A DNA stretch of 64,000 nucleotides, from positions 186,001 through 250,000 of IMG/VR virus record IMGVR_UViG_3300032236_001850. One strand, given 5' to 3'. The notes below the pieces were generated by a model, which saw only the letters and a list, made by a program, of their open reading frames with translations, made no database searches and was not told the DNA's origin. The position numbers were made by a program, and so were the translations under genes. Shown one piece after another: positions 1 through 26,211 of this stretch (position 1 is its first letter; every line of letters begins with the position of its first letter).

Positions 1-117
1 ACCGCGGTTCATACTATGTTAGTAACATACTCTCCACGCGTATTGAATTTTAACGGTGGTTTGCATGGTAATTATGAAGTATTCATTATATTTGCTATGT
101 AATTAAAACAATTAAAC

Positions 118-312
118 ATGGAAGAACAAGTTAAAGAAGCCAGAGAACACTTCAGAAATCACAAATCACATATACACATTTATCAGATAGAAGATGATGT
201 CATAGCCGAACTCCTCGGGCGAGAGCATATTCAAAGATTATCTTTCGAGATGAAGATGGATTGCCTTTATGACCATTTGCTTTCCCAAGGTCTTTGTGAT
301 GTGACCGAATAA
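118..312 (+). CDS. hypothetical early protein
   Basis: ORF directly after a promoter repeat and A-rich leader. Confidence 0.7.
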   Translation: MEEQVKEAREHFRNHKSHIHIYQIEDDVIAELLGREHIQRLSFEMKMDCLYDHLLSQGLCDVTE

Positions 313-470
313 TTCACATGTAAACACATATTCACCGCCGGCCGAGGTGGTCTAGCGGGATCCCTGACAGGATAAAAAAATTCCGATGGATACTTGAAAT
401 TTTAACGTTTTATATCGTGGTTTATCAATAGGAATGCCTTATATTTGCCATGTAATTAAAACCAATCAAT

Positions 471-713
471 ATGAATCAAATCACACACGAACAATTAAGA
501 AATCGGCTTAGAGAAGGTTCAACCCGATTCTTTTTCAGAAAGACCAACGGTGAACTAAGACCTGCCTATGGCACAACAGATTTAACAAGAATTCCAAACC
601 ATTCCCATCCAAAGGGAGGTGACGCCCCGGTGGGTACCACTTGCTACTTTGACCTCGATAAGAATGCTTGGCGCTCAGTTTCACACACCCAAGAAATTTG
701 GTCCAATGAATAA
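471..713 (+). CDS. SH3-like beta-barrel protein (DUF2693/WYL_2-like)
   Basis: F.F.K.NGELR.A.GT...YFDLDK.AWRS pattern typical of this phage family. Confidence 0.7.
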   Translation: MNQITHEQLRNRLREGSTRFFFRKTNGELRPAYGTTDLTRIPNHSHPKGGDAPVGTTCYFDLDKNAWRSVSHTQEIWSNE

Positions 714-885
714 ACATGAAATCATAAGCAAGACCAGAAGACTGCTAAACTCCGCGGGCTTCGATGATATGGAATACACAATCAGCTTGCAAGGTCCAAC
801 GGTGATAATGGGAGAGGGCATGGAGGAAAAATTAACACCAGAATTACGAAAAGAAATCCTGGAAACAGGAATGAAGTTTCTATAA
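706..885 (+). CDS. hypothetical protein
   Basis: ATG at 706 overlaps the upstream stop; the ORF-track start at 619 is probably too long. Confidence 0.6.
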   Translation: MNKHEIISKTRRLLNSAGFDDMEYTISLQGPTVIMGEGMEEKLTPELRKEILETGMKFL

Positions 886-1153
886 CCAGGACTTCCTGCT
901 TTGGTCAGGTTATAGCTAAAGGGTGACATTTGAGAGTCACCCTTTTTTTTGTGGCATGAATTAGGCCTGGATACTTGCCCACCGAGGTCGACGGTGTGAC
1001 CGGATTCACATGCATTTTGATTCATGATGAAGCAAGCAATTGTTTTTCCGAATCGGATGATGCTTAACACCGAGGAAAAAACTTTAACGTTTAATATCGT
1101 TGTGAATTAACTATTATGTCTTATATTTGCTTTGCAATTAAAAAATCAAAATT

Positions 1154-1504
1154 ATGGGAACATTAAAAGCAGGAGACATGGTGATGGTAACCACACAGAA
1201 CGCAAACGGTGTGGGATTCATCTATAACACATATCCAGACAAACCAGAGGAAGGAGTCCTAAGAGCATCCATAGCCTGGAGCGACGGTGGATGTAGCGAC
1301 GGCCTTGTTATTTCGGAATTCAAAACCATAGAGAAAACCGGGGTGCTTACAGAAGAGAAAGGAAAAGAAATAATCAAGGAATTAGATGAATTTGCATCGG
1401 GTCTGGATAAGTATTCATTAGGCTTGCCTGGTGGAGTTGACCACACAGGAGAAATGGTTCATATAATCCGAATGGGTCTAATCAACGAGACCGTGGAAGC
1501 TTAG
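1154..1504 (+). CDS. hypothetical early protein
   Basis: ORF after promoter repeat. Confidence 0.7.
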   Translation: MGTLKAGDMVMVTTQNANGVGFIYNTYPDKPEEGVLRASIAWSDGGCSDGLVISEFKTIEKTGVLTEEKGKEIIKELDEFASGLDKYSLGLPGGVDHTGEMVHIIRMGLINETVEA

Positions 1505-1506
1505 TT

Positions 1507-1779
1507 ATGAGTGTTTCGATCAACGGTGAAGGCGCGAAGCTCTGGGGATTAGTCAGAGTTGATAGGGATCGCTACAGAGACACTTCACTGGAAATGTGGC
1601 TGGCCAACGATGAGGAACATCTTAAAGAGCAGATAAAGGAGGAATATCTACAGGATTACAATGACGGTGATTGGTTTAGAAAGGAGGTCGAGAAGGATTT
1701 TGAAGCGGATTGGGAATACACCATATTACCATTTGAAATAGACCTGAGCGGACTAGTAAAACCGTGGACCAAACTTTAA
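1507..1779 (+). CDS. acidic hypothetical protein
   Basis: Coupled to upstream ORF; D/E-rich. Confidence 0.7.
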   Translation: MSVSINGEGAKLWGLVRVDRDRYRDTSLEMWLANDEEHLKEQIKEEYLQDYNDGDWFRKEVEKDFEADWEYTILPFEIDLSGLVKPWTKL

Positions 1780-1844
1780 CGGTTTTTATCGTTGTGATTA
1801 CAAATAATTTCTTACTTTTACTCTGTAATTAAAATCAACCCATT

Positions 1845-2255
1845 ATGACAAAAGCAACATTAAGACAACAATTAGAAGCCTTCGATAGAGGCATTTACCT
1901 CGATTCCGACGGTAAGGAAAGTTGGTGCTACACTTTCTACGATTGGTTCTGTCAGGACTCATCACTGAAGAGAAAATCTGATAAATTATTCAAACAGGTT
2001 AAACGATTTGTAGCAGCAAACCCAAACATCAACCAGGATAAAACCTATGTGTTCTTCAAGAACAACTGTCCGATGAACGGACCTTTATACGATTCATTCT
2101 CAATCTGTGATATTGAAGGTGGTGGAGTTCTATACTGGGTTACAGGTAAGAGCGGACACACTTACCAAGCCGAGGTGTACTCCAGTGCTACTGGATTTGA
2201 AACTCCAGCAAGAACAGGTAAAAAATTCTCAGATTTAGTGAGGGATCCCCTATAA
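1845..2255 (+). CDS. hypothetical phage protein
   Basis: ORF after promoter repeat; FYDWFC and FKNNCP motifs. Confidence 0.75.
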   Translation: MTKATLRQQLEAFDRGIYLDSDGKESWCYTFYDWFCQDSSLKRKSDKLFKQVKRFVAANPNINQDKTYVFFKNNCPMNGPLYDSFSICDIEGGGVLYWVTGKSGHTYQAEVYSSATGFETPARTGKKFSDLVRDPL

Positions 2256-2509
2256 AATACATGCTCCATAATAATGGTGGTTTTAAAGGTGGGGGCCTCG
2301 TGAAAGCGAGGCTCTTTTTTTGTGACCAATCGCTAAGCAATTATCCACTGCTAGACACCGTTGACAACGGTGTGATGTAGATGATTCGATCGGGACCTCA
2401 AAAGATAGTATGTTACTAAGATACTCTCACGCGAGAAACTTTAACGGAATTTATCGTGGTTATATCAAATTGATTACTTACATTTACCATGTAATTTAAA
2501 CCAACCATT

Positions 2510-2767
2510 ATGAAAAAAGCAGCATTAATCTTTATCCGTTGGGGCATCTTCTACCCGATAACAATACCATTAATGTTTATATACGGTGTACCCACAGCGG
2601 CGGTGTTCTTCCTGTGGGAATGGATAGAAGATAAAAAGAAAACCAGTAACAAATTTGATAGCCGAGGTGCTAAGGCATTGAGAAAGTATGGTAGAATAAC
2701 ATCTATACCTTACTTCTTCTTGGCCCGGGTGGATGATAAGCTAAATCCAAATGGAAAGAGATTCTAA
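2510..2767 (+). CDS. membrane protein
   Basis: Hydrophobic N-terminal segment. Confidence 0.65.
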   Translation: MKKAALIFIRWGIFYPITIPLMFIYGVPTAAVFFLWEWIEDKKKTSNKFDSRGAKALRKYGRITSIPYFFLARVDDKLNPNGKRF

Positions 2768-3047
2768 TAAATTAATAAAGGCTAGGGAAGCAGCGTTAAA
2801 CTCCGTCGTCGGCGGTGTGATAGCGTGTCCATCCTGCGGAACACGCCACGCAAAATCCAGTTATCAATCAGTATTCTGTAAGTCAAAAGGCGGTACAAAA
2901 TGTAAAGATAATTACTGGAACAATGTCGACGGTGAGAAGCGGGACAACAAGACAAGAATTTCTCCAGCTAGAGAGAAATGGAATAAGCGAGTAAAGACAG
3001 AGAATAGTCTTAGAAAGGTTAAAAAAATGTTGGGTGTACTTAAATAA
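2751..3047 (+). CDS. zinc-finger protein
   Basis: CPSC...C...C motif. Confidence 0.65.
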   Translation: MERDSNKLIKAREAALNSVVGGVIACPSCGTRHAKSSYQSVFCKSKGGTKCKDNYWNNVDGEKRDNKTRISPAREKWNKRVKTENSLRKVKKMLGVLK

Positions 3048-3121
3048 AACTTTAACGTTTTTTATCGTTGATATCTCGAAAGGATCCCTTATATTTGCTT
3101 AGTAATTAAAACAAAAATAAA

Positions 3122-3358
3122 ATGGCTTCAGATTCTAAAAAAAATTCACATGATTCATTAAGAAACCCCAAGATTGGTGATAAAGTAGCTGTGCAGACTC
3201 ATTCCGACGGAAAAAAAATATGTGTTGTTGATAGTATTAATAATGAAAAAATTCATTTTAAAAATAGAAATTTTGGATTGGAGGTTAATCTTAATATGAT
3301 TTTTAATTTGGAAAAACCATATAGAGGTGCAAACTTTTTTTACCAATCCATTAATTAA
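3122..3358 (+). CDS. hypothetical protein
   Basis: ORF between two promoter repeats. Confidence 0.6.
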   Translation: MASDSKKNSHDSLRNPKIGDKVAVQTHSDGKKICVVDSINNEKIHFKNRNFGLEVNLNMIFNLEKPYRGANFFYQSIN

Positions 3359-3430
3359 AACCTTAACGGATTTTATCGTTATAACCACGAAAGGGTTTCT
3401 TATATTTGCTTAGTAATTAAAAATGAACAA

Positions 3431-3679
3431 ATGAACGAGATTAGAGACATTAACGATAGAGTACTTAAAAATCTGGATGTTATCGACCTTCACCAAACAG
3501 TCAACGGTGAAAACCTATTCATTGTGGCAGATTTGGAAGCCAAGGACATTCGATACTTTCATAATCCCTCATTGAAATACGAATACTCCGTTGATGACCT
3601 ATTCAGACCAGACAGGTACACAGGTGAGGTAGAATTTGAAATAATGGATAAGGAATGGGTAAATTGGGTAGAACTTTAA
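3431..3679 (+). CDS. hypothetical protein
   Basis: ORF between two promoter repeats. Confidence 0.7.
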   Translation: MNEIRDINDRVLKNLDVIDLHQTVNGENLFIVADLEAKDIRYFHNPSLKYEYSVDDLFRPDRYTGEVEFEIMDKEWVNWVEL

Positions 3680-3740
3680 CGTTTTATATCGTTGTTATCT
3701 CGAAAGGATCCCTTATATTTGCCCTGTAATTAAAACAAAA

Positions 3741-3941
3741 ATGACAAACACTATCATCTTCTTCCTTGCATTATGCTTCACCTTTTACTTCTTAGGTAAG
3801 CTAGCCACTTGGATGGTCTATAAAATAGCACCACAAAATTGTAAAAGAGAATTTGGAGGTAAAGATATTTTTATTACGAACACAGTGATGCTCATGGGTA
3901 TTATCCTTTGGACAATTTTATTTCACAATCTAACTCATTAA
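3741..3941 (+). CDS. two-helix membrane protein
   Basis: Two hydrophobic segments. Confidence 0.65.
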   Translation: MTNTIIFFLALCFTFYFLGKLATWMVYKIAPQNCKREFGGKDIFITNTVMLMGIILWTILFHNLTH

Positions 3942-3943
3942 AA

Positions 3944-4219
3944 ATGAAAAAATTCTCATATAAAATATTAATACTGGCGCTTATCCTAAGCCTAACCAGC
4001 TGCGCAGATGCAGAAACCGTGGACACTTGCTTGAAGGGACACACGTATGGATTTTGGGGTGGTCTCTGGCATGGACTTATAACACCATTCAGTTTTATAG
4101 GCTCATTAATCTGGGACGACATAACAGTCTATGCGGTTAACAACAACGGTGGATGGTACGATTTCGGCTTCTTGCTCGGCGTCGGCGGCTTGGGATTCGG
4201 TGGTGGTAGGAAAAGTTAA
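3944..4219 (+). CDS. lipoprotein-like membrane protein
   Basis: MKK signal with LTSC lipobox; GFWGGLWHG and WYDFGF motifs. Confidence 0.75.
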   Translation: MKKFSYKILILALILSLTSCADAETVDTCLKGHTYGFWGGLWHGLITPFSFIGSLIWDDITVYAVNNNGGWYDFGFLLGVGGLGFGGGRKS

Positions 4220-4717
4220 GGTTTCCATAATGCCTTAGAATTGGTTGGTTAATATGCTCGAAAAGGAAGACTTTGGTCTTCCTTTTTTTTGTGACCTTTT
4301 GACATGAAATCAGGGCGGCTCCCAATCCCACCGAGGACGACGGTATGATTGGATTATCCGATCGGGACCTCAAAAAATTGGAAAATAATTTTTTTTATTT
4401 GAAAGTTTTTCTTATATTTGTGGAGTAATTAAAATCAACACACATGTCAAAAACACACACAAGAGCTTCTCATAAGAGAACAATCTCAACAAGAACAGGT
4501 AACACCAATAGTAGAAAGACCATAACCGTTAGCAGTACCACGGTGAAAAGAAAGTAACCATGAGAAAGATTGGAAATTGGATACTTAAGGAATTATTATT
4601 GGAAATCAATCTAAACCCATCCCGAGGTGTTTACCACGTGAGAATGGGTTGGATTTGGATCATTTACTTCGGTGTTAAACTACTCGCAGGATTTCTTCAT
4701 CTATTAAAAGACCTATT

Positions 4718-5011
4718 ATGAAACTTTGGATGCTATTAATGGTTGGCTATGGTGTCTACCTTGCCTTCTTCAAGAAAGAGCCGGAGGTGCTAGAGGATCC
4801 GACCGAGCCCTCAAAAGATACTATGTTAGTAACATACTCTCCACGCGAGGGCCACGGTGAGAGACACGAGACGAGACATGAGCTAACCGAAGGAGCCAAG
4901 AGACTCATGGAATCTAATCTTAGTGATAAACAAAAGAATGATTATAAAGAAATATTTGGTAAAGATTTCTTAGACAAAAACGCTGAGGACACACCATTCA
5001 CCGATGTTTAA
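4718..5011 (+). CDS. membrane-anchored hypothetical protein
   Basis: N-terminal TM segment; contains an operator-like repeat in frame. Confidence 0.55.
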   Translation: MKLWMLLMVGYGVYLAFFKKEPEVLEDPTEPSKDTMLVTYSPREGHGERHETRHELTEGAKRLMESNLSDKQKNDYKEIFGKDFLDKNAEDTPFTDV

Positions 5012-5441
5012 CCCAACCCGAGGTATAAAGCATCAGACCGATTCGAAAGAGTCGGTTTTTTTGTGGGCTTTACCTTTTGATATGAATTAGGCCTGTCCTC
5101 TTTCTCACCGTCGACAACGGTGTATCTGAAGTTTATTTTAAGAGAATCTCCAATTGGAATCCTATGGAATCTCCAATGGGAAACACCGCGGAAAAACTTT
5201 AACGAAAAAATTCGTTGGGTATTAGTAAGTATTCATTATATTTGCTTAGTAATTAAAACAAACCAATCATGACAGAATCACAGGAAAAACAATTGGAATT
5301 AGAAATACTGATGTCATTAGAGAATGCAGCCTGTATAGGAAGAAGCCAACAAGACTACGGTGAATATTGTAAGAGACTAACTGCTGGTCTAATGACTAAA
5401 ATAAGAACATTTAACAAAAGTGAAACCACTAAAGAAAAATA

Positions 5442-5633
5442 ATGGCACGGATAATCAATAAAGTACACATCTCCACAATCCAACCAGGAGATGTTATATT
5501 TCACAACGGTGCTGACCGTACTCTCTCACAGAAAGATATTAAACATTGTCCTTTCATGGGCACAACGGTGTTTGGCGATTCTTACCATTTGGGGTACAAA
5601 CAAGTTAATAAAGTAACATTTAAAACTAATTAA
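5442..5633 (+). CDS. hypothetical protein
   Basis: ORF in early cassette. Confidence 0.65.
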   Translation: MARIINKVHISTIQPGDVIFHNGADRTLSQKDIKHCPFMGTTVFGDSYHLGYKQVNKVTFKTN

Positions 5634-5634
5634 G

Positions 5635-5820
5635 ATGGCAGAGTATAAAGTAACATTAACAATAGAACTCACGGTGCAAAGCTATTTAACAGAGGATGAA
5701 ATAGGCGATAACGTTGCAGAACAAATCAGCGTTAATTTCTTGGGCCAAGATATAACCGACGTTGAAATAGAGAGCGACCGTCTTGTTACTGTTGAGGTTT
5801 GGCAGGAAGGAAATGTATAA
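5635..5820 (+). CDS. acidic hypothetical protein
   Basis: Coupled to upstream ORF. Confidence 0.65.
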   Translation: MAEYKVTLTIELTVQSYLTEDEIGDNVAEQISVNFLGQDITDVEIESDRLVTVEVWQEGNV

Positions 5821-6094
5821 CGCACAACTAAACCGGCAACGGTGTAACCAAGAGGCTCAGCCTCTTTTTTTGTGGCCTTTTGACATGAAATCAGGGCGGC
5901 TCCCAATCCCACCGAGGACGGCGGTGGGAACAAGGGCAGGTCCTTAAACATAGTATGTTACTAAGATACTCCGCACGCGAGGGAGAAATCACCGAAGCCT
6001 TAGGTTACAGCTGAGCACAAGTGCTCCACACCGATGCCCGCGGAGGGTGCACGTCTTGCCCTTTTATTTTTTATGAGGTTTCCCACTGGGACCA

Positions 6095-6182
6095 CAAGAA
6101 AGGGCCTGGTAGATTACCTACCAGACCCTAACCAAACAAAACCAATTATTAAACCTATGGGATAACCAGTCCCTTATTATGA
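6095..6182 (-). ncRNA. putative small RNA
   Basis: Reverse-strand early promoter (6187-6237) and intrinsic terminator (hairpin 6101-6129) with no ORF between them. Confidence 0.55.
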
Positions 6183-6397
6183 TGGAGCAAATATAAGAAA
6201 TCCTTTTTGAATCCAAACGATACCAAACCGTTAAAGTTTCAACAACGGTGTGTTTCCAGAGGCTCCAAGAAAAATCCCCAGATGGAATTCAGATGGACCC
6301 GATGCTTTCCACCGTGAGAAAAACTTTAACGGATTTTATCGTTATTAATTAGTTTTTATACATTATATTTGCTTAGTAATTAAAACCAATTCACATT

Positions 6398-6871
6398 ATG
6401 AAAAAAATCACAATCTTATTAGCTTTGACCATCGGTGTATCAGCATGGTCTCAATGTCACAAATCTGAAATCCCTTCTTCAGTTACTGCAACCTTCAGCG
6501 GTGGATTCGCCAAGACCATGTGTGGGGAATTATCTTTTCGTCTCAGAACTTTCTATGTCGGCGCCGGTGTGGGAGTGATGGTCGATAATGAAATTAGAAA
6601 TGAAGGTGGTATCATTTATACTAGAAACGATCATGCTTACTTCGTAAACCTCGGGTTTCAAAAGGACAACATCCACTACGGTGTGAGAATCGGGAATCAA
6701 ACCCAAGTTCATGTTACTGGAACAGTCGGCGGTGTGAGACAGGAGCTACCTAATGAAAACAAACTCTTGGTAGGAGCGCTCATCGGCTACAGTGTTACAC
6801 CGCGAATCAGATTTAATCTCGGCTACGATACATTTAATAAAGTCAACCTAGGTGCTGCTTTCGGGCTCTAG
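6398..6871 (+). CDS. outer-membrane beta-barrel-like protein
   Basis: Signal peptide; alternating Gly/aromatic strands. Confidence 0.6.
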   Translation: MKKITILLALTIGVSAWSQCHKSEIPSSVTATFSGGFAKTMCGELSFRLRTFYVGAGVGVMVDNEIRNEGGIIYTRNDHAYFVNLGFQKDNIHYGVRIGNQTQVHVTGTVGGVRQELPNENKLLVGALIGYSVTPRIRFNLGYDTFNKVNLGAAFGL

Positions 6872-7292
6872 TTAAAACACCCAAACATAGTATGTTACTA
6901 AGATACTATGCACGCGAGGGCTCACGGTGAGGAACGTGAGCCTTTTTTTGTTTAAAGGTTAAGGAATTAGATTGAACAAACGTGTAAGCACCGTCGGCCG
7001 CGGAGAAATGCATGTGAAAGAAGAGAAAGCCATAAGAAAGGGAAGAGAAGAAAGAGAAAGAGATAAGAAGAAGATAAAGAAGAGACAGATGTAACACACC
7101 GTGGCCCTGGAGCACTTAGACCCCTATAGCTAAAATTAAAGTTAAGCTTAGGTAAAGCTAGGTAAAATAGTACTAAACCGTCGACGACGGTGGGACACGG
7201 ATTTGCTTATTTCAAAACGTTAAAGTTTGAAAGAAATTTTTTTTATTAAAAAGAAAGCCTTATATTTGCTCTGTAATTAAAACATAAACAAT

Positions 7293-7526
7293 ATGAAAAA
7301 TCTAATCATCTTAATTTTAATCGTCCTAGGTTTATCACTGCAATCTTGTGGTAGTGCTTGTGCAAGAACTCACAGATACTGGAACACTCATCGTTGCGTG
7401 CAAACAACGGTGAAGACAAGTAAGCAAGAAGAAAAATCATCTTCTCTATTTAACAACATAAACGCCGGTGCAGCACGGATGCTCTGTTTTGATCAGATGC
7501 AAACTGACCGAGGTGTAATCACATAA
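7293..7526 (+). CDS. putative lipoprotein
   Basis: LQSC lipobox. Confidence 0.6.
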   Translation: MKNLIILILIVLGLSLQSCGSACARTHRYWNTHRCVQTTVKTSKQEEKSSSLFNNINAGAARMLCFDQMQTDRGVIT

Positions 7527-7983
7527 GCATGTTTTAATTACACTCTAACTGCTCGAAAAGAGGCTCAGGGAAACCTGGGCCCTTTTTGTGGGGTGCCCCC
7601 AAATATCTATTATAAGCATGTAGCCCACCGATGCCGACGGTGAGCAAAGGGAAGACATCCTTAATTTAATGGCATGCTCTTGCCCGAGGTGAATTACCTT
7701 TTTACATTGCCTAATTTTAAAATGCAAATTTATGCATGTTAATCACCGTCAAAAACTAAGCCCCCCTCCAATATTATGAAGGGGGGTAAAATTAGGGTCC
7801 CCTATAGGGGCTATGAAGCCCCCTCGTATAAGGAGCATATTGGGGGCCTGAAAGAGCTTATTAGGGGACCCTTATTTTGGAGAAAGCCTTGTATACTATG
7901 TAAGGGACCCCGGTTTTGAAGGGCCAATTTGAGGGGGCCTCGTGCGTGGCATAGGGTGGGCACCGTGAGAACGCTTCGGCGGT

Positions 7984-8107
7984 TCTAACAAGAATGGGCA
8001 AGAGTTCCGACTTACTCTAACAAGAATGGACAAGAGTTTCTACTTACTCTAACAAGAATGGACAAGAGTTTCTACTTACTCTAACAAGAATGGGCAAGAG
8101 TTTCGAC
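7984..8107 (+). repeat. 4 x 32-bp tandem repeat
   Basis: TCTAACAAGAATGGRCAAGAGTT units at 7984, 8016, 8048, 8080, without spacers. Confidence 0.9.
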
Positions 8108-8286
8108 TCTCTACTCTCTCTACTCTAATAATGGATGGCAAGGGTCAATTCAGTTCCACTATAACTATGGCAGAGATCCCATTCTCTGATCCCATTCTCT
8201 ATATAGCAGCAAAGTACCCCTTCATTTGTTCCGTCTGGATAGGGACTTGGTTCACCTAGATATATAAGAGAAACAAATATCATTTT

Positions 8287-8607
8287 ATGAAACACCTTAA
8301 GCCAATCAACGAGTTCTTTTTCTTTGGAGGAACAACTAGATTCATCATCGTGGAAGGCACAGAGCCATTCCACACAGAGATCCAAGCCCGCATAGACGCC
8401 ATGGAGGAATCGGGAGAGTTGGCCATAGTTGATATGTCCACTTGTGATGTGGCAGAGATTGAAGCAGCTGTGGCATCTGATGCCATGAAGATCCTTTTCG
8501 TTAACGGAGACGAGTGTGATCGTGCCATTAGATACGCTGTCATGGATCTACATCCTGAGATCATCCCTGCCCCTGAGTTGTCTCAAGAAGATCTTGACGT
8601 GTCCTAA
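8287..8607 (+). CDS. acidic putative virion protein
   Basis: GATATATA upstream; MKHLKPINEF N-terminus. Confidence 0.7.
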   Translation: MKHLKPINEFFFFGGTTRFIIVEGTEPFHTEIQARIDAMEESGELAIVDMSTCDVAEIEAAVASDAMKILFVNGDECDRAIRYAVMDLHPEIIPAPELSQEDLDVS

Positions 8608-8723
8608 TCCCATCTTTAGAGTCAATAGCAATCCCTGGGTGTGGGCCCGGCCCCTAGAAAAATGAGGCGCAAAATGGCTCCACAGCGCCTTCGCCTTGGT
8701 TTTATTGGAAGATATATAGCAAC

Positions 8724-9116
8724 ATGAAAAGAATCAAAACATTTGAGGAACTCTTTGAGAGCATGCTAGACGGCTCGCTGAGAATTCAGAGGAACGAACT
8801 CGACAAGACATCCTGGGAATACAGCTGGTTGCTTGGTGGCAGAGAGGTTGGGGGGATGATGGTCTTTGTGGACGGAGGGAATGCTAGCATCGTGAGTTTC
8901 TTCAAACACAGAGGCAGGGAGACGCCGAGAGGTTGTGGGTATGTATTCATCAAGATGTGCATCGACGATCTGCTGGAATCTGGATTTGCTGTGCATCAGG
9001 CTGATCACACATCCAATGCAAACTCCCAAGTGATTTGGAGAAAGCTTGCAAATGAATACAAGGTGGAGACCACGACTTGGAGAGGAGATCCTGCCAAGGT
9101 TATTAGAAAAAAATGA
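8724..9116 (+). CDS. GNAT-like putative virion protein
   Basis: RGCG motif and N.NSQ.IW.KL resemble GNAT motifs; capsid-targeting-like N-terminus. Confidence 0.5.
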   Translation: MKRIKTFEELFESMLDGSLRIQRNELDKTSWEYSWLLGGREVGGMMVFVDGGNASIVSFFKHRGRETPRGCGYVFIKMCIDDLLESGFAVHQADHTSNANSQVIWRKLANEYKVETTTWRGDPAKVIRKK

Positions 9117-9330
9117 TACAAGATGTCAAAAGCAAAGAAGGTTGGCAAACAAAAAGCCAACAGAGGTAATCAAGTAAAAAGAGCTCGAGTGATTAAAGCC
9201 AACGAGACAATTCTTTCGAGATTAAAAGGTTAATTTAAAAGTTCATCACCACGATGGACTTTTTTGTGTGATTTCGAATTTTCACCGAGGGAATTGATTA
9301 TATTTGGGATTCAAATGAAGGATGTGAGAC

Positions 9331-10500
9331 ATGGCGAAAATTGTGGAGATTAAATTCATATACCTTGACACGATGGATCTGGGTCATATGGTGGGTAAAT
9401 ATCTTGTGGATGGCAATGAATATGAACTGAGGTACACCGAGGATAACCAAGTTACTGGATATCACAAAACCGGAATATATCGGATGATTGATGGAGAATT
9501 AAGGATGGACACAAAGATACAGATCACTGGCGATTCCTATATTGAGGTAAATAGATCCACTGGAGCAACTCATAGAGTCGATTCCAGATATGGCGCAGCG
9601 ATTGACAGGTATGATAAGAAGGGAAGGGATCTGGTGCAAATAATAAAAAATAGTATTGTTGAATGGAAGAGACTAAAATAGATTTCAGTTTCACTTGGTT
9701 TAAAGGAATGCCAGCGAGAAACTCAATGTATCTCTTCCATTATATGGATGGTGAAACTTATGATGTTGATGTATCAGGGTACATTAGTGGAAAATTTGTA
9801 TTAGGCGATGACATCCATGCTTGTTTCCCGTCACATCAAAGATTACATTTAACAGGAACCAATTTAGAGGAACTTCGAAATTTTTCAGTACAATGGGAAA
9901 AAATATTATAGACGTTGAAAGAGTCGAGTTTATCTATGATATTCGAATGAAGGAATCGGGTATCTCCGGGTATTTATTAGGAGAAGGATATAAGGATTCA
10001 TTGATAGAAAATATGAAATATGTAGCCAAGACCAGAAAATGGGGAGAACATAAAGACACAGGTAAACCCCTGATGGCAGTGGAGATTTTTGGTACATTTT
10101 TAATGAGTAGCGGAAATAAATTCACTACCAACGAAGGACAATGTAATAACGGATGGCTAATACCTGGATTAAGCTGGGATAAATTTAAGGTTCTAAATAT
10201 CGAATGGGTGAAAATTCAATAAAATCAGAATCCTGGGAATTTATCTATGATGTATCATTTGACCAATTTGATACATGGGAGATTCTGGGTAGTGGACCTG
10301 TTAGATTTGTTCATAATGAAAATTATAGGGTTCTGTTTGGGAGTGAAACATATTTCCTAGTTTATGGCAGATTCTTGGGTAAGGATAAATGGGCTACGGT
10401 AGACATGGTTTCCCAGGGATGGGCTTGTGATATAATGTACGCAGATAAAATGAAACTGTTTAATCCTCGTAAAAAGTGGATATCCCTTGGCGTCTTATAG
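9331..10500 (+). CDS. tandem array of four paralogous proteins (9331-9681, 9663-9911, 9893-10222, 10204-10500)
   Basis: Shared F.Y/W near the N-terminus and conserved Trp near the C-terminus; successive overlaps. Confidence 0.6.
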
Positions 10501-11245
10501 TTATCCATCTGATATTATCCAACACAAACATAGCAAATTCACTGAGCCCCTTAAATTCATCAGGAATTTCTCCAGTGGTTCCAATAAAAATTCTGGTTGA
10601 TATAAGACTGGACATTACTGGGACCCACGTTTGAAATATGGATTCTCTACTTTTTCTATCAAGATATTGAAAATCGTCAACGAATAAACAATCAACGTTT
10701 CTTCCCATTGGTCTACCAACAGGCCAAGCTGTTATTCTACCACCGTTTTCAAATCTCACACTAACATCCTCCATGCTTTCCACTCCAGGCTTCATATAGA
10801 ACGGTAACTCTGCGTACATTTCCATGATTCTTTTTATTGTTTCTGCAGACCTTTCCATTTTGGATGTAATTATAACAACGTCCCTGCCCTTAAATACTAG
10901 ATCATGAAGTGCCATAAATTTTATGGAAGAACTTAGTCCAGTTTGTCTTGGCAGGGCTACAGGATAGAATCTTTTTAATTCATGCTCCGTTAGGATCTTT
11001 TCCTGATTGTTATGCAATATAGGTTTACATTTATTACCACCAGGATAAACTATTCCATGATTATGTATGAAGCTAACTGGATTTCTATCATATTCATATA
11101 ACGTAATCATCTCCTGATCCGTTATTTTTATATTGACCCCACACCTTCTTATACCAGGAAGCTCCTTATACAATAAAGATTTCATCTTGGGATCATTAGT
11201 TGACTCCATCAGATCTATTTCTTTTTGTGTGTGTATTTGCTTCAT
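10460..11245 (-). CDS. terminase large subunit ATPase-like protein, truncated and degenerate
   Basis: LHNNQ, PRQTGLS (Walker A lacks Lys), LPFYMKPGV, FENGGRI, LFVDD; no nuclease domain. Confidence 0.75.
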   Translation of the reverse strand: MKQIHTQKEIDLMESTNDPKMKSLLYKELPGIRRCGVNIKITDQEMITLYEYDRNPVSFIHNHGIVYPGGNKCKPILHNNQEKILTEHELKRFYPVALPRQTGLSSSIKFMALHDLVFKGRDVVIITSKMERSAETIKRIMEMYAELPFYMKPGVESMEDVSVRFENGGRITAWPVGRPMGRNVDCLFVDDFQYLDRKSRESIFQTWVPVMSSLISTRIFIGTTGEIPDEFKGLSEFAMFVLDNIRWITIRRQGISTFYED

Positions 11246-11312
11246 TGTGTATTATATAGAATTATAACTTTATGTTTCCGATATATAGAGTATGAAAACT
11301 ATAAAATAAATC

Positions 11313-11876
11313 ATGAAAAATATAAAAACATTTAAGCAGCTTTTCGAGAATTCAATGATGGATAAACGACTTAAAATTGTTTCTTTTGGTGCTGACAAAT
11401 TTGACGAATTCATCTCTTATATTAATTCATTGGAAGGAAATTGGAGAATGCTAAGTAATGTATCTATCTTTAAAAGTTACACAGCGAGGAATGGTAATGT
11501 ATACATTATAAATGATGAATTTGTCATTCAGTACAAAGGTGAAACAATAGGTGATATAGAAGTGGTATCCGGCGCTGATGCTACTAATCGTACAGTAAGA
11601 GATCTTTCTCAAATTTCCGAAAAAATCGGATGTTCTGAAATAGTTTTAAAAATTGCTTTAATCATTACCAAAATGACAGGTGAATTTTCGATGGATCTCA
11701 ATAATAATATGGGATCAACAGAAATAATGGATTATCTATGTGATTATTTCAAAAAAAATCCACTTATGCTTTATACGCTTGATGGTTATCCTGAATTAAA
11801 AAAAGAGGTGATGGATAAAACAGGGATTAAAGATTATGGTTCTATTGGGAGAAAATTAAAATCTGGATTGATGTAA
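11313..11876 (+). CDS. putative virion protein, paralog family
   Basis: MKNIKTFKQLFE N-terminus; C-terminus shared with 12479. Confidence 0.75.
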   Translation: MKNIKTFKQLFENSMMDKRLKIVSFGADKFDEFISYINSLEGNWRMLSNVSIFKSYTARNGNVYIINDEFVIQYKGETIGDIEVVSGADATNRTVRDLSQISEKIGCSEIVLKIALIITKMTGEFSMDLNNNMGSTEIMDYLCDYFKKNPLMLYTLDGYPELKKEVMDKTGIKDYGSIGRKLKSGLM

Positions 11877-12469
11877 TGAAAAATATAAAAACATTTGCAC
11901 AACTATTCGAAAACACGATGGGTAATCAAAAATATCCAAACGTGGTTACCTTCGGAAGAGATGACTATGAAAAATTCTCAAAATACATCGATCATATAGA
12001 CAGATCAGGTGAAACCAATTTATCGAATTGGGACATCAAAAAGGATAAATCCAAATTTTATGAATTGATGGAAGATGTTTATATAAGCTTCGTTGATGAA
12101 AAGGATTTATTTGGGTGGTTCTATAACACTAGAAAGAAATCCTTATCTGCAGACAAAATTGAAACACCAGAAAATATAGAATTATTCTATACAGCAAAAA
12201 TAGAAAAATATTCACAACCATCCGAAGATTTTGTTGATTTTGTCACGATAGAGGATAGTGATGATCCTAAATGGGACGAATTAAAAACTATACTATGGTT
12301 ATCAACTCTAGACGATAATATAGATTTAATAGAAAGAGCAATAAAAAACTGCTCCAGAGGAGAGGAATTTAAAATGATGTCACGTATAAGAAAATACTCG
12401 CCAGACTTAGCAAATCAGCTGGGTATTGGTAGTAATGATATGGCTGATCTTGGAGACCTTGGATTTTAA
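11876..12469 (+). CDS. putative virion protein, paralog family
   Basis: MKNIKTFAQLFE N-terminus. Confidence 0.75.
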   Translation: MKNIKTFAQLFENTMGNQKYPNVVTFGRDDYEKFSKYIDHIDRSGETNLSNWDIKKDKSKFYELMEDVYISFVDEKDLFGWFYNTRKKSLSADKIETPENIELFYTAKIEKYSQPSEDFVDFVTIEDSDDPKWDELKTILWLSTLDDNIDLIERAIKNCSRGEEFKMMSRIRKYSPDLANQLGIGSNDMADLGDLGF

Positions 12470-12478
12470 TATTGAATT

Positions 12479-13237
12479 ATGAAAAATATAAAAACATTCA
12501 AACAACTATTCGAAAACCTTGTCCAGTTAACACCATCAAGTTATTGGTCTTTCGTTGTTTTCTTTCCTGATGAAAGGGTAGGTGCAACTAGGCTTTCAAG
12601 ATTTTTAGTTTCTGGTGATTCTACAAAAACGATAACAACCGAATTTTTGGAAAATTTACTACCTCAGTATCTAGGATTTGACTCATTGTATACTCTTTCT
12701 CCCGATGTTGCACCACCAGACATAAATGGATTTATGGAATTTGGTGAGTGGGTACACAATAACATAGACGAGATATCGGATAGAGCTGGAGTTGAAAAAA
12801 TATACATTAACGGTAGGGAAATTGCTAATGGACTAGACTTTCCTGAATTTTGGGATGCTTTTAATGATGAGCATGGTACGGACGAATACACTGAAATGTA
12901 TGGAGATCCAAATCACATAGCATGGTTAATAATGAACTTTTTCAGAAGCTTTTCGGAGGAGGACACACTGAAAGATATTTTCGAATTCTTTAACACACCA
13001 GTTGGTAATCCAGTAGGTAAGAACAATCACTTTCTGAAATTAGGTGAAAAATATCAGAATGTGCTCGAGAGGATTTTGGATTCAAAGGAGGGCGATTGGA
13101 TTTATGATTATTTTAAAAACAATCCACTAGAACTACATATTGTGGAATTACCAGAAATAAAGAAAAAAATACTTCTTAAAACAGGAATAAGGGATTTCAG
13201 CGAGATAGGCAGAAAACTAAAAAAAGGATTAATGTAA
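12479..13237 (+). CDS. putative virion protein, paralog family
   Basis: MKNIKTFKQLFE; YFKNNPL...GRKLKKGLM. Confidence 0.75.
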   Translation: MKNIKTFKQLFENLVQLTPSSYWSFVVFFPDERVGATRLSRFLVSGDSTKTITTEFLENLLPQYLGFDSLYTLSPDVAPPDINGFMEFGEWVHNNIDEISDRAGVEKIYINGREIANGLDFPEFWDAFNDEHGTDEYTEMYGDPNHIAWLIMNFFRSFSEEDTLKDIFEFFNTPVGNPVGKNNHFLKLGEKYQNVLERILDSKEGDWIYDYFKNNPLELHIVELPEIKKKILLKTGIRDFSEIGRKLKKGLM

Positions 13238-18386: not shown

Positions 18387-19288
18387 TAGAAAATATCAGA
18401 CATTTTATAATTAAGTTTTTGTGCGTATTTGGCCATCTTTTTTATGCCTTTCATGTACCTGATTCTAACAGTCTCCCCGGTAAGACCCATGCCCATGTTT
18501 ATTGATATCTGAGTGTAATTTTCTTCACCATCATCGTATGGAAACACACCATGTTTTCTTAATATAATTTCGGTCTCATGTGAATCTAAAACCTCGGTCA
18601 ATTTAAGAAGTATCGAATTTTTATCCTTAACATCAGTTTCAATGTCACTGTAATAATCTCCGGAGTCCATTATGTCTATCAATGTTCCTGAACCCGCTTC
18701 GTCACCCAAAGGTGAATCAAAAGATGATGGTTTTATATCAGCACCTATTGCGTTATGAATAATGTTTGTTTTTATTCTTGAGAATTTTTCAAGCTTTTTT
18801 ATCTCCTCTACAGTTTCTTCGAATGTTGCATTTCTCCCTTCCTTCATGGAAATTTCGTTTGCTACGTCCTTCATTGCTTTAAGTGTATTAACTTGATTTA
18901 AAGGTATTCTAACAGTTCTACCGTTATCACTAAGATGTTTTAATATCTCTTTTCTTATGTGCCAAACTGCAAAGGATATAAATTTAAAACCCCTACTTGG
19001 ATCAAAAATAGAAGCAGCCTCGACTAGACCTATATTTCCAACTGCTACTATTTCTGCAAAATCCTCGGGGTCCTTTGCATAATTTTTTGCTACCGTAAGA
19101 ACGAATCTTAAATTTGCATTAATCAATTTCAATCTGGCTTCTTCGTCGCCATTAAAAGCAAGAAATGCAATTTCTGCTTCTTTCTGTGGATCTATGACTT
19201 TCGTTCTGTCAACTTCCTTTAAATATAACGCTGAAGCTTTTGTGGTCCTTGGGGTAAAAGCCTCTTTGTTAACTTTGATTTGTCTCAT
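18386..19288 (-). CDS. RNA polymerase sigma factor, sigma70 (RpoD/RpoS-like) family
   Basis: ANLRFV..VAK.Y, GNIGL..A...FDP.RGFKFISFAVW.IR, RTVRIP, region-4 ETVR. Confidence 0.92.
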   Translation of the reverse strand: MRQIKVNKEAFTPRTTKASALYLKEVDRTKVIDPQKEAEIAFLAFNGDEEARLKLINANLRFVLTVAKNYAKDPEDFAEIVAVGNIGLVEAASIFDPSRGFKFISFAVWHIRKEILKHLSDNGRTVRIPLNQVNTLKAMKDVANEISMKEGRNATFEETVEEIKKLEKFSRIKTNIIHNAIGADIKPSSFDSPLGDEAGSGTLIDIMDSGDYYSDIETDVKDKNSILLKLTEVLDSHETEIILRKHGVFPYDDGEENYTQISINMGMGLTGETVRIRYMKGIKKMAKYAQKLNYKMSDIF

Positions 19289-24209: not shown

Positions 24210-24662
24210 ATGGAATGGAAAAGTCTAACTACGAAAAAGTCCATCGACCTATCTAGCTACTTAGCTGATTGGATGGCAAACAACCCTGAAGACAAGATCT
24301 ACATAGGGTGTGATTCGCAAAATCACAACGGCACTACGACATTCGCTACGGTTATTGTATTACATCAACCGAACAGGGGAGGACACGTGCTTTACAGCAA
24401 GATGACAATACCTAGAATACAAGCTAGGTACGAAAGGCTGTGGAAGGAAATCGAATTAAGTGCAGAAACAGCACACGAAATTATGGAGAATGCTGGGCAA
24501 ACTCCTGACTTCATTGATATCGACCTTAATCCAGATCCTAGACATCAATCTAATACGCTGTTAAGATCCGCTGTAGGTTTAATAGAGGGTATGGGTCTAA
24601 AGGCTAGATACAAGAGTGCATCTAACTGGTCCATCTCTATTGCAGATTCTATATGTAAATAG
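24210..24662 (+). CDS. RNase H-like YkuK/DUF458 family protein
   Basis: IYIGCDSQ, RLW.E...S, DIDLN, AD. Confidence 0.85.
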   Translation: MEWKSLTTKKSIDLSSYLADWMANNPEDKIYIGCDSQNHNGTTTFATVIVLHQPNRGGHVLYSKMTIPRIQARYERLWKEIELSAETAHEIMENAGQTPDFIDIDLNPDPRHQSNTLLRSAVGLIEGMGLKARYKSASNWSISIADSICK

Positions 24663-24748
24663 AAAAAATTCTGATAATTGAAACAAATTTCAAAATTTCG
24701 GTACAATTATTGATATATAAAATCTCTAAACATTAAAAAATTACAAAA

Positions 24749-24928
24749 ATGAAAAGGACATTATTCTTACTTGCAGTACTCTTCTCGCTGAGTCTAACAT
24801 CATGCAAACACGTAGATGCTAAAGCTTCTACTGATGCAGCAGTTGACACCACAGCAGTTGATACGACTAAAGTTGATTCTACAGCAGTAGACACAACAGC
24901 AGTTAAAGTAGACACAACAAAGGCATAA
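24749..24928 (+). CDS. small lipoprotein with VDTT repeats (not in ORF track)
   Basis: MKRTLFLLAVLFSLSLTSC lipobox; GATATATA upstream; terminator downstream. Confidence 0.75.
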   Translation: MKRTLFLLAVLFSLSLTSCKHVDAKASTDAAVDTTAVDTTKVDSTAVDTTAVKVDTTKA

Positions 24929-25059
24929 ATCAGAATAAGGTTTATATCTAAAGGGTCTAGTTTACTAGACCCTTTTTAATTTAAAAAAGATTCAAAAATA
25001 TTTTTTTATCTCGAAAACATTTCATATATTTGCAATGTAATTAAAAATAAAATAAAACT

Positions 25060-25133
25060 GGCCCCGTAGCTCAGCTGGATAGAGCATCAGATTTCTAATC
25101 TGAGGGTCGAAGGTTCGAATCCTTCCGGGGTCA
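25060..25133 (+). tRNA. tRNA-Arg(TCT)
   Basis: Full cloverleaf; loop TTTCTAA. Confidence 0.95.
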
Positions 25134-25147
25134 CTAAATTAAAAATT

Positions 25148-25243
25148 GGGTATAATTACTACAATGTCTGACATAATCAATTGGTAATCCTAGGGAGGAG
25201 TAAGTCTGTACCAGTAGTTTGGGTTCGAGTCCCAATATATCCA
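25148..25243 (+). ncRNA. tRNA-like RNA (acceptor stem and T arm, non-canonical core)
   Basis: GGGTATA/TATATCC-A, TTGGG-TTCGAGT-CCCAA. Confidence 0.55.
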
Positions 25244-25305
25244 CAAATAAACTAAAATGAAAAAACGATACGATATGCATTAGGTTTAATATAACCAAAT
25301 GCAAA

Positions 25306-25554
25306 ATGTCAAAAAACAGAAACAGAGCAAAGCTCAACAAGTGTTTAACTCCAAGAGAGTACAAATTAACATATCTAAAGCATGAATATGATTATTGCTT
25401 TACATGTTGCAAAAGAGCTGGAAGCTTTTATTATGATTGTTCTCCCATGTCAATGAAAAAGAAAGGGAGACACGGAAACGGTAAAATAATTTCTACATTT
25501 GATGCTAGATCTTATAGAACCTGGAAGCATACTAGAAGAACACAGTATAAATAA
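25306..25554 (+). CDS. basic Cys-containing protein
   Basis: C..CC motif; R.YRTWK..R..QYK. Confidence 0.6.
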   Translation: MSKNRNRAKLNKCLTPREYKLTYLKHEYDYCFTCCKRAGSFYYDCSPMSMKKKGRHGNGKIISTFDARSYRTWKHTRRTQYK

Positions 25555-25561
25555 TAACCCT

Positions 25562-25920: not shown

Positions 25921-25933
25921 CAAAACTATAAAA

Positions 25934-26203: not shown

Positions 26204-26211
26204 ACACATCA

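Follow-up and report, generated by a model that had tools for sequence, protein, structure and literature searches.

An array of palindromes and half-sites marks the early region of a 434-kb phage of Bacteroidota

A block of small early-type genes, roughly 19 kb in length, in a 434,509-bp phage record carries a conserved 17-bp palindrome closely downstream of its transcription terminators, and the 8-bp half-site of this palindrome is written into about a third of the silent coding opportunities on the sense strand. These features point to an unidentified DNA-binding protein that marks the block, which is probably the terminal repeat of the genome. We analyzed a 64-kb window of the record (window position 1 corresponds to genome position 186,001), in which CACCG-N7-CGGTG palindromes had been noticed in the first 8 kb. 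The observation holds and is stronger than first described, whereas its interpretation, that a dimeric protein coats the first-entering DNA for protection, injection control or silencing, is only partly supported.

Structure and distribution of the motif

Exact CACCG-N7-CGGTG occurs five times in the window, whereas dinucleotide-preserving shuffles give 0. With one mismatch or fewer, there are 11 copies, all located before position 7,642 and the only ones in the window, which agrees with the original prediction of at least 11 copies and of none beyond ~8 kb. Among spacings of 0-24, only the N7 spacing occurs, and CGGTG is the most enriched 5-mer of the region. The predicted half-sites inside ORFs were also confirmed, and the duplicated blocks at 4283-4345 and 5864-5926 are 59/63 identical. 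In 42 exact copies from four genomes, two further positions, G8 and C10, are invariant although the search did not require them, giving 12 invariant positions, while the flanks carry about 0 bits of information. The full motif is hence CACCGnnGnCnnCGGTG, and its half-site is CnnCGGTG. The features of the window are as follows (a dot denotes no strand).

1-8060 (+), right-hand 8 kb of the motif island, with small early-type ORFs, all on the + strand, at 40-42% GC against about 34% in the rest of the genome; the whole island is about genome 175,250-194,050 (window -10,750 to 8,050)
333-349 (.), palindrome with one mismatch (CACCGCCGGCCGAGGTG); the same variant is kept in G001 and G004, two of the related records described below
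980-996 (.), exact palindrome, 29 nt after the terminator at 918-950
2356-2372 (.), exact palindrome, 34 nt after the terminator at 2291-2321
2801-2817 (.), one-mismatch copy inside the ORF at 2751-3047, which encodes a basic zinc-ribbon-like protein
4329-4345 (.), one-mismatch copy, 38 nt after the terminator at 4261-4290
5106-5122 (.), exact palindrome, 43 nt after the terminator at 5035-5062
5910-5926 (.), exact palindrome, 38 nt after the terminator at 5832-5871
6029-6045 (.), one-mismatch copy in a non-coding stretch
6989-7005 (.), one-mismatch copy, 39 nt after the terminator at 6916-6949
7176-7192 (.), one-mismatch copy upstream of the promoter at 7261
7626-7642 (.), last exact palindrome, 38 nt after the terminator at 7556-7587; no promoter follows it
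545-7642 (+), 31 sense-strand half-sites CnnCGGTG, starting at 545, 625, 797, 989, 1282, 1521, 2365, 2598, 2810, 2927, 3502, 4144, 4538, 4667, 4852, 5115, 5355, 5504, 5563, 5837, 5919, 6243, 6430, 6496, 6562, 6676, 6727, 7185, 7405, 7463 and 7635; most sit in ORFs in the frame xxC-NNC-GGT-Gxx
333-7633 (-), 14 antisense half-sites, read as CACCGnnG on the + strand; nine are the left arms of palindromes listed above (333, 980, 2356, 4329, 5106, 5910, 6029, 6989, 7626), and the other five (1068, 4999, 5184, 5990, 7097) lie mostly between genes
918-7587 (+), seven intrinsic terminators (hairpin plus T run, then GTG(G/A)) at 918-950, 2291-2321, 4261-4290, 5035-5062, 5832-5871, 6916-6949 and 7556-7587
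87-7290 (+), Bacteroidota-type promoter blocks sharing a -7 box TAnnTTTG and the leader GTAATTAAAA, with -7 boxes at 87, 440, 1813, 2479, 3090, 3401, 3714, 4413, 5237, 6364 and 7261; those with the island-specific upstream element AACTTTAACG-N6-7-ATCGTTG are termed class B here
7750-7985 (.), conserved non-coding block rich in G and C runs, directly after the last palindrome; present in G001, G002 and G004
7984-8108 (.), tandem array of a 32-nt unit, 3.9 copies, containing GGRCAAGAGTT; contigs break and depth halves here, at the putative right end of the terminal repeat

A uniform motif density across the genome would have spoken against the original prediction, and counting the motif along the record shows the opposite. 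The window starts inside the cluster, which continues about 10.7 kb upstream, and the window start is not a genome end. The array spans about 175.25-194.05 kb, where the half-site occurs at 2.96/kb (+) and 1.22/kb (-), against 0.108/kb and 0.063/kb outside, i.e., it is 27x and 19x denser in the island, respectively. One further terminator-linked palindrome lies outside the cluster at genome position 151,503. Isolated CGGTG words in the island have C at -3 in 46/55 cases, against 44/227 outside (p=5e-19), and their -2/-1 preference (R, A) matches that of the palindrome arms, indicating the same word in isolation.

The same motif and layout are found in four related huge-phage records (G001, G002, G004 and G411), even where the flanks are unalignable and the gene order is shuffled. 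Across seven orthologous triplets in G000, G001 and G004, the 12 fixed positions differ in 2/252 pairwise comparisons and the five free positions in 49/105, although these sites were chosen because they match the motif, which biases the comparison towards conservation. It is possible to regard the palindrome as a passenger in a terminator-plus-promoter cassette that spread by duplication and recombination, since some copies lie in longer duplicated blocks, gene order is shuffled between relatives and assemblies break at the repeated modules. However, this reading is contradicted by the divergence of the flanks to noise around 12 fixed positions and by the maintenance of half-sites at silent positions inside unrelated ORFs, and it is considered the least likely. 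A signal acting in RNA, whereby CnnCGGUG in early mRNAs and a hairpin with a 5-bp stem and 7-nt loop in read-through RNA would be read by an RNA-binding protein or nuclease that times early mRNA decay, on the model of T4 RegB, which cuts at GGAG, is also very unlikely. It would fit the sense-strand preference in ORFs and the confinement to early-type transcripts, but the arms are invariant without compensatory changes, the inner positions are often not complementary, and the invariant G8 and C10 cannot pair with each other. In addition, the palindromes lie beyond the terminators and are mostly untranscribed, a word is unlikely to be read alike when base-paired and when single-stranded, and antisense sites are still 4.7x enriched.

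Link to terminators and polarity inside ORFs

The earlier remark that the palindromes often lie just after terminators proved to be nearly a rule. All seven strong terminators in window 1-7,700 have a copy 29-43 nt downstream, and in the genome-wide scan 12 of 13 island terminators have a palindrome, against 1 of 64 outside. In contrast, promoters that follow a stop codon directly, with no terminator, have none. Such a location at the 3' ends of transcription units, together with the many strong co-directional promoters of the island, would also suit topological or chromatin organizers that relieve or confine supercoiling in a densely transcribed, torsionally constrained block, resembling REP/BIME elements at operon ends, through the protein itself or a gyrase-like enzyme that it recruits. 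One of the two proteins found in all five islands has an SH3-like barrel with lysine/alanine/proline-rich tails and Cren7-like fold matches, but these matches are weak (E of 0.09 or higher). This reading, which does not explain the sense-biased saturation of ORFs, is unlikely, and no match to the Y1 (IS200/IS605-like, RAYT) transposase that accompanies REP elements was found in the genome, although the position at gene 3' ends agrees with such elements.

In island ORFs, 39 of 105 codon contexts (37%) that could silently hold the sense half-site do hold it, against 41 of 2336 (1.8%) elsewhere, and the antisense occupancy is 4 of 56 (7%; sense against antisense, p=2.6e-5). In-ORF sites are fully conserved in 21/29 cases in G001 and 14/25 cases in G004, against 18-40% for same-frame control words. 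Of 59 isolated sites, 42 lie inside ORFs. The orientation bias would equally suit any process that runs left to right, such as DNA entry or replication.

The word is a polar, G/T-rich 8-mer with degenerate positions, embedded in ORFs through common codons and confined to the probable genome ends, and it could hence be a Chi-like signal read by a RecBCD- or AddAB-type helicase-nuclease, protecting the terminal repeats and promoting the repeat-to-repeat recombination that forms concatemers, with the palindromes as two opposed signals back to back. We regard this as unlikely. The invariant 1-bp gap between the halves in 42 copies, without insertions or deletions, is not needed for two independent polar signals, the terminator link is unexplained, and the majority orientation suits an enzyme entering from the right end, not from the left end that would enter first by analogy with T5 and T7. 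In 101 Bacteroidota genomes, the ratio of the 8-mer to its reversed control was mostly 0.4-2.8 (maximum 6.3), and strand counts in two 200-kb stretches were 53:39 and 25:32, so neither excess nor skew was seen in this sample; the host of the phage is not known, and these counts therefore do not settle whether the word is a Chi- or KOPS-type word of the host. Similarly, the palindrome occurs 0-8 times per genome in 401 Bacteroidota genomes, about the same as the reversed control, and is not a chromosomal motif in those searched.

Island boundaries and the probable terminal repeat

Per-contig depth is about 2x to the left of window 8,040-8,064 in four runs, and the drop also occurs against an adjacent contig of similar GC. 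The rare word GGRCAAGAGTT occurs six times in the genome, once at the left boundary and four times in tandem at the right boundary, bracketing the island. The island is therefore probably a collapsed long direct terminal repeat, as in T5, which would give a linear genome of about 453 kb. The evidence leaves a long exact repeat undecided, since it rests on the depth of assembled contigs, which is not a copy number, no raw reads were examined and only the right boundary was measured directly. Next to this boundary, the non-coding block at 7750-7985 is conserved in four genomes, and each genome has its own tandem array beside it.

The first-entering position of this DNA, originally guessed from the window start, may thus be correct after all, but coating, protection or control of injection is not shown. 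In this alternative, a host or virion-delivered protein would bind the first DNA to enter at about one site per 240 bp, acting as a ratchet that pulls in the huge genome, as a shield, or as part of a two-step injection pause like that of T5. The confinement to the probable terminal repeat, the dense and fairly even spacing (median gap 177 bp), the words pointing in the direction in which the left end would enter, and the conserved block and tandem array at the right boundary, as in the T5 repeat region 3 and injection stop signal (bioRxiv 10.1101/866236), are consistent with it. However, the strict placement 29-43 bp after terminators has no role in this model, which end enters first is not known, there are no DnaA boxes as proposed for T5, and the absence of over-representation in the 401 genomes argues against a common host protein. 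This alternative is doubtful, though less so than the other rivals. Marks by which terminase or a partner recognizes or measures the repeat during concatemer processing would fit the sharp boundaries, but they are unlikely, because terminase recognition usually needs a few sites at the boundary instead of about 80 spread through ORFs, the boundary has its own distinct repeats, and the terminator link and polarity are unexplained.

Proposed function and comparison with known systems

Our preferred reading, held tentatively (probability about 0.4), is that an unidentified sequence-specific protein, probably phage-encoded, reads CnnCGGTG, binding as a dimer at CACCGnnGnCnnCGGTG and singly at isolated words, and controls transcription of an early block driven by host-type promoters, probably present at both genome ends and first to enter the cell. 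Isolated sites, placed almost only in the sense orientation inside ORFs, would stop or slow RNA polymerase that runs into them, and the dimer sites beyond terminators would insulate each short transcription unit from read-through, so that the early block would be shut off or partitioned once the protein is present. The analysis itself demonstrates the motif, its geometry, its confinement, its terminator link, its orientation bias and its selective maintenance, whereas protein binding, terminal-repeat status and the roadblock function are deduced from these. The dimeric-protein part of the original prediction fits the fixed spacing, the invariant positions and the lack of hairpin covariation, but the terminator link and the sense-strand preference point to transcription at least as strongly as to injection. 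Some facts sit poorly with the roadblock reading: strong intrinsic terminators should not need a backup, and a steric roadblock does not by itself explain why the post-terminator site must be two-fold symmetric. Furthermore, profile searches of the genome returned no match to HTH_3, HU, ParB_N (E<=0.001) or Y1 transposase, and 47 island ORFs gave no DNA-binding Pfam domain. The ParB-family protein that is encoded alongside the clustered palindromic sites of a ParB/parS-type centromere or KorB-type operators was not found at this threshold.

The precedent for polar, multi-site elongation blocks is provided by the stoperators of cluster A mycobacteriophages (L5 gp71 and relatives), which are many copies of a short site for one phage protein, act on elongating RNA polymerase and lose repression when reversed (PMC9283540). 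In both systems, site orientation correlates with the direction of transcription. However, stoperators are 13-bp asymmetric sites bound by a monomer, lie mostly in short intergenic gaps over the whole genome of a temperate phage and serve immunity, whereas the sites here combine an 8-bp word with a two-fold 17-bp form, lie mostly inside ORFs or just beyond terminators, and are confined to about 19 kb of what looks like a lytic huge phage. No repressor homologue was found, but the stoperator domain itself was not searched for, and the presence of such a repressor is thus left undecided by the HTH_3 and Pfam results.

In the case of T5, a terminal repeat of about 10 kb is, like the terminal repeat that is inferred but not mapped here, full of small, poorly conserved early genes read by host polymerase and has a highly conserved untranslated region with palindromes and tandem direct repeats at its right end (bioRxiv 10.1101/866236), a feature that is matched here. 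In T5, the repeats are concentrated in three untranslated regions and include paired DnaA boxes, whereas the palindrome here is dispersed at terminators, the half-site saturates the ORFs, and only one DnaA-box-like word (TTWTNCACA) was found on the two strands of the whole island. No Pfam or PHROG function was assigned to island ORFs, and no homologue of A1, A2 or dmp was seen, although A1 and A2 were not searched for specifically.

DNA uptake sequences (Neisseria DUS and Haemophilus USS) have a similar statistical architecture, with a short word at high density, placed in ORFs in a favored reading frame and found as inverted pairs downstream of genes, and KOPS and Chi are also polar 8-mers with degenerate positions; this comparison was not tested here. 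Those words are chromosome-wide and are read by host machines, while the word here is confined to one viral block, and its inverted pair has a fixed 1-bp gap and sits beyond the real terminator instead of forming it. The PeSL cassettes of T4-type phages are repeated promoter and stem-loop modules that flank small novel ORFs in a plastic early region and favor shuffling, as the gene order is shuffled between relatives here, but PeSLs carry no extra conserved protein-site palindrome and have no half-site enrichment inside ORFs.

Motif, terminator link and silent-site conservation

We found that the pattern CACCG-N7-CGGTG occurs five times exactly in the window (980, 2356, 5106, 5910, and 7626), against none in 100 shuffles, and 11 times with at most one mismatch, all between 333 and 7,642, while no other spacing from 0 to 24 occurs. 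The original prediction that such palindromes are concentrated in the early region is confirmed, although the cluster is cut by the window start. In the complete 434,509-bp IMG/VR virus record (G000, in which the window covers 186,001-250,000), there are 11 exact copies, at 180,267-193,642 plus one at 151,503. A uniform motif density along the genome had been named in advance as the outcome that would speak against the pattern; in contrast, the density of CGGTG rises sharply only in the bins between 175 and 195 kb, which hold the motif island (about 175.25-194.05 kb). The record reads well under code 11, 87% of its ORFs lie on the + strand, and its 70-bp end overlap only shows that it assembled as a circle. 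A nucleotide search of the phage collection with window 1-8400 found no match.

We collected 42 exact copies from four genomes. Positions 8 (G) and 10 (C) are invariant although the search did not ask for them, so that the site is CACCGnnGnCnnCGGTG, and the flanking positions carry essentially no information. The inner nn positions are often not complementary, G8 and C10 could not pair across a one-base loop, and the arms never show compensatory changes; the conservation is therefore of sequence, not of a stem. A signal acting in RNA is considered very unlikely. Isolated CGGTG words in the island carry C at -3 in 46 of 55 cases, against 44 of 227 elsewhere (p=5e-19), and share the R-A preference of the palindrome arms. 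The unit is thus the 8-bp word CnnCGGTG, and the palindrome is two such words facing each other across one base. Chi-like signals, an unlikely alternative, do not explain this invariant one-base gap, and the majority orientation of the word faces the wrong end for them. The word occurs at 2.96/kb (+ strand) and 1.22/kb (- strand) in the island, against 0.108/kb and 0.063/kb outside, i.e., 27-fold and 19-fold. In addition, the word CCGAGGTG, which differs from the half-site at one position and is unexplained, occurs 8 times on the + strand and never on the - strand in the island, where 0.2 are expected (window 2170, 2664, 4622, 5020, 7508, 7684, and others), and the shorter word CCGAGGT is also enriched in the relatives' islands.

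A scan for hairpin-plus-T-run terminators on the + strand found 78 in the genome. Of the 13 between 180.2 and 192.9 kb, 12 have a palindrome 27-43 nt downstream, as does the one at 151,469, whereas none of the other 64 does. A separate scan of the window, with a slightly looser T-run rule, gave 7 of 7 strong terminators with a copy at +29 to +43 nt. Promoter blocks that follow a stop codon directly, with no terminator, have no palindrome, while the last terminator has a palindrome although no promoter follows it, and the distance from the palindrome to the next promoter varies from about 70 to 440 bp. The site is therefore anchored to the terminator, not to the promoter.

Inside ORFs, most words sit as xxC-NNC-GGT-Gxx. 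This frame is also preferred genome-wide (85% against 79%), so the frame alone proves nothing, and frame bias as proof of a protein-level cause was rejected. We therefore counted every codon context that could carry the word without changing the protein. The sense word occupies 39 of 105 such contexts in the island ORFs (37%), against 41 of 2,336 in the rest of the genome (1.8%), and the antisense word occupies 4 of 56 (7%) in the island, against 23 of 1,512 (1.5%) in the rest; sense against antisense within the island gives p=2.6e-5. Strand bias as pure codon usage holds in part for the 5-mer but is rejected for the 8-mer by this opportunity-normalised test. In orthologous ORFs of two relatives at 70-85% nucleotide identity, the in-ORF words are fully conserved in 21/29 and 14/25 cases, whereas same-frame control words are conserved in 18-40% of cases. 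At seven orthologous intergenic palindromes, which were picked because they match the motif, the 12 fixed positions differ in 2 of 252 pairwise comparisons and the 5 free positions in 49 of 105. A passive cassette without function of its own is contradicted by these silent-site and orthologue tests. Such an opportunity count can be reused as a general way to detect DNA-level signals hidden in coding sequence.

Related genomes and content of the island

A scan of viral contigs for the shared promoter and leader, and a second scan for the palindrome, led to four more records.
G001 (430 kb): 15 exact copies, mostly at 158.5-170.4 kb.
G002 (373 kb): 7 copies at 296.3-306.0 kb.
G004 (a 66.6-kb fragment): 10 copies.
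G411 (290 kb): 7 copies.
G002 and G411 share almost no alignable DNA with G000 in the island, and the roughly 11 shared small proteins are in a different order. Yet the layout is the same in all: a terminator, then 27-46 nt, then the palindrome, with a sharp right-hand end to the half-site zone.

The island holds about 45 small ORFs of unknown function. Pfam gives only DUF4314, WYL_2, an OmpA-like barrel, and SEC-C, a relative's first island gene gives a weak DUF4313 match, and PHROGs gives no functions. Rfam and tRNA scans found nothing in the island. Each operon has a promoter with the Bacteroidota -7 box TAnnTTTG and an A-rich leader, and an island-specific upstream element, AACTTTAACG-N6-7-ATCGTTG, marks many of them. 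The island is GC-richer than the rest of the genome (40-42% against 34%) and is flanked on both sides by a different family of paralogous genes. Further features of the island and its surroundings are as follows.
Window 12-35, 2406-2430, 4819-4843, 5951-5975, and 6888-6912 (genome 176,368-192,888, plus one copy at 131,301): a second island-specific palindrome, AT-rich, CATA(C/G)TATGTTA(C/G)TAACATACT followed by (C)CACGCGAG, with 10 copies in the genome, 9 of them in the island, often directly upstream of the island-type promoter block; it is probably the site of a second regulator.
Window 5930-6320 and 6950-7260: two non-coding stretches of 300-400 nt inside the island, the second very purine-rich (AGAAAG-type repeats), with no Rfam match.
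Genome 172-176 kb (locus L005) and window 8287-13237: the flanking genes, a paralogous family with a conserved N-terminus (MKxIKTFxQLFE) and C-terminus (W-I/V-K-I-R/Q/K); a second small family near 152-154 kb ends in W-K-K/R-I/L-R. The function is unknown, and the conserved termini may be a targeting or coupling signal.
Window 24278-42985: 31 tRNA genes covering nearly all amino acids.
Window 18389-19288 (-), 37732-39309, 45234-46250, and 47884-49977: a sigma-70-like protein (region 2), a TROVE/Ro60-like protein, a protein with an Mtd_N domain (as in the targets of diversity-generating retroelements), and a ClpC/ClpB-like double AAA+ ATPase, of which the best bacterial matches are all from Bacteroidota (58-63% identity).

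Boundaries of the island and the probable terminal repeat

The sequence elements at the boundaries are as follows.
Window 7750-7985: a non-coding block of about 230 nt with runs of G and C, nearly invariant in four genomes, including the distant G002. It could form several stems, but no covariation is available to tell RNA from DNA function; it may be a packaging or injection signal, or a small RNA.
Window 7984-8108: a tandem array of a 32-nt unit repeated 3.9 times, with the core GGRCAAGAGTT.
Genome 175,248: a single copy of this core in the non-coding gap at the left edge of the island.
Window 10463-11245 (-): a truncated 261-aa paralogue of the terminase large subunit, with the ATPase half only, 2.4 kb right of the island boundary and conserved in G001.
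The word GGRCAAGAGTT occurs six times in 434 kb: once at 175,248, four times in the tandem array at 193,996-194,092, and once elsewhere. Each relative has its own, different tandem array at the same place, preceded by the conserved block. The terminase gene next to the boundary was rejected as support for a genome end, since the ORF is a truncated paralogue and the full-length terminase genes of the relatives lie elsewhere. Packaging marks are an unlikely reading of the motif.

Mapping of the genome ends had been proposed beforehand as a check, and was approached here through assembled contigs of public runs. In all four runs examined, from three studies plus the probable source sample, contigs break at the tandem array at window 7,984-8,108, and the per-contig depth is about twice as high on the left as on the right.
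Run X1: 46.5-52.6 against 27.3.
Run X2: 25 against 11.8.
Run X3: 15.3 and 10.8 against 4.4-7.5.
Run X5: 9.5 against 2.1-5.8.
The drop is also seen against the directly adjacent contig of similar GC content. A 37.1-kb contig of the source run has an intermediate depth of 38.7; by its repeat matches we place it at genome 153.2-190.3 kb, which is an inference, and its depth fits a left boundary near 171-175 kb. Two independent assemblies of a relative (L353 and L354), a 403-kb ENA contig and an 8.8-kb Logan contig, end at exactly the same point inside the island. This is uninformative about physical ends; the repeated regulatory modules evidently break short-read assemblies. Together, the boundary evidence makes a collapsed direct terminal repeat of about 18.8 kb the most likely reading (about 0.7), with the caveats that contig depth is not a copy number and that molecule ends could not be seen in assembled contigs. 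The organisation is like that of T5, where a 10-kb repeat carries the pre-early genes and ends in a conserved untranslated region full of palindromes and tandem repeats (bioRxiv 10.1101/866236).

Candidate binding proteins and possible mechanism

The genome has no match to HTH_3, HU, ParB_N, or Y1 transposase, and a ParB-like reading of the 120-aa ORF left of the island was not confirmed. The palindrome is not a common chromosomal motif in Bacteroidota, with 0-8 copies per genome in 401 genomes, 296 of them with none, similar to the reversed control. The 8-mer shows no striking excess in 101 genomes, and an apparent all-plus-strand distribution in two of them was an artefact of how matches are listed, the true counts being 53:39 and 25:32. 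A phage-encoded or virion-borne protein is therefore more likely than a host one, though the true host was not identified. Phylogenetic profiling for the binder was not possible, because G003, a record that lacks the motif, looks unrelated and G005 is a fragment. Only two proteins are present in all five islands: an 80-aa WYL_2 barrel protein, and a 167-aa protein whose conserved core is predicted as an SH3-like barrel (pLDDT 81-91) between disordered lysine/alanine/proline-rich tails, with only weak fold matches, to SH3 and Cren7. Neither can be tied to the motif, and both are leads rather than findings.

The fixed geometry argues for a dimer on double-stranded DNA, and the same word scattered singly argues for weaker monomer or cooperative binding at about one site per 240 bp. 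The sense preference inside ORFs shows that orientation matters to something that moves left to right, and the anchoring just beyond the terminators ties the two-fold sites to the ends of transcription units. The closest precedent is the stoperator system, in which many asymmetric sites oriented with transcription let one phage protein stop elongating polymerase, and reversing a site abolishes the effect (PMC9283540). We therefore tentatively favour polar control of early transcription, with the palindromes acting as insulators after each unit (a probability of about 0.4). The motif, its placement, and its selective maintenance were read directly from the sequences, whereas binding by a protein, the terminal-repeat status, and the action on polymerase are inferred. 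Three points count against this view: no binder has been found, strong terminators hardly need a backup, and DNA entry or replication runs in the same direction as transcription here. The original prediction, that a dimeric protein coats the first-entering DNA for protection, injection control, or silencing, is partly supported; its entry or protection idea stays alive as a doubtful alternative, which gains from the terminal-repeat evidence and loses on the terminator link. Topological organisers are unlikely.

A more speculative possibility, which we consider doubtful, is that the phage writes a polar 8-bp 'address word' into a third of all silent opportunities of its terminal repeat, and that a directional machine would read it. 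Such a machine could be a DNA-import ratchet or translocase that reels in a 450-kb genome, or a factor that rides on RNA polymerase, and the two-fold sites after each terminator would be its loading or stopping points. That would be a viral counterpart of uptake sequences or KOPS, a kind of signal not described for phage genomes.

How phages with genomes above 400 kb get their DNA into the cell, and how they time their first genes, is unknown, and nearly all such phages are uncultured. This clade offers a clean, conserved cis-code, comprising a 17-bp inferred dimer site at nearly every early terminator (12 of 13), a polar half-site maintained at silent codon positions, and sharp boundaries that coincide with a probable terminal repeat. 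If the reading is right, the code defines the early or first-entering module from sequence alone, gives a direct bait for finding the regulator, and would extend the idea of multi-site, orientation-dependent control, known from small temperate mycobacteriophages, to huge phages of Bacteroidota. Literature searches for the motif, or for comparable arrays in huge phages, found nothing specific. Multi-site, orientation-dependent protein-site arrays and early-gene terminal repeats are both known; compared with these, what we did not find described is the combination of a terminator-anchored, inferred dimer site with near-saturation of silent coding positions by its half-site, confined to the probable terminal block of huge Bacteroidota phages.
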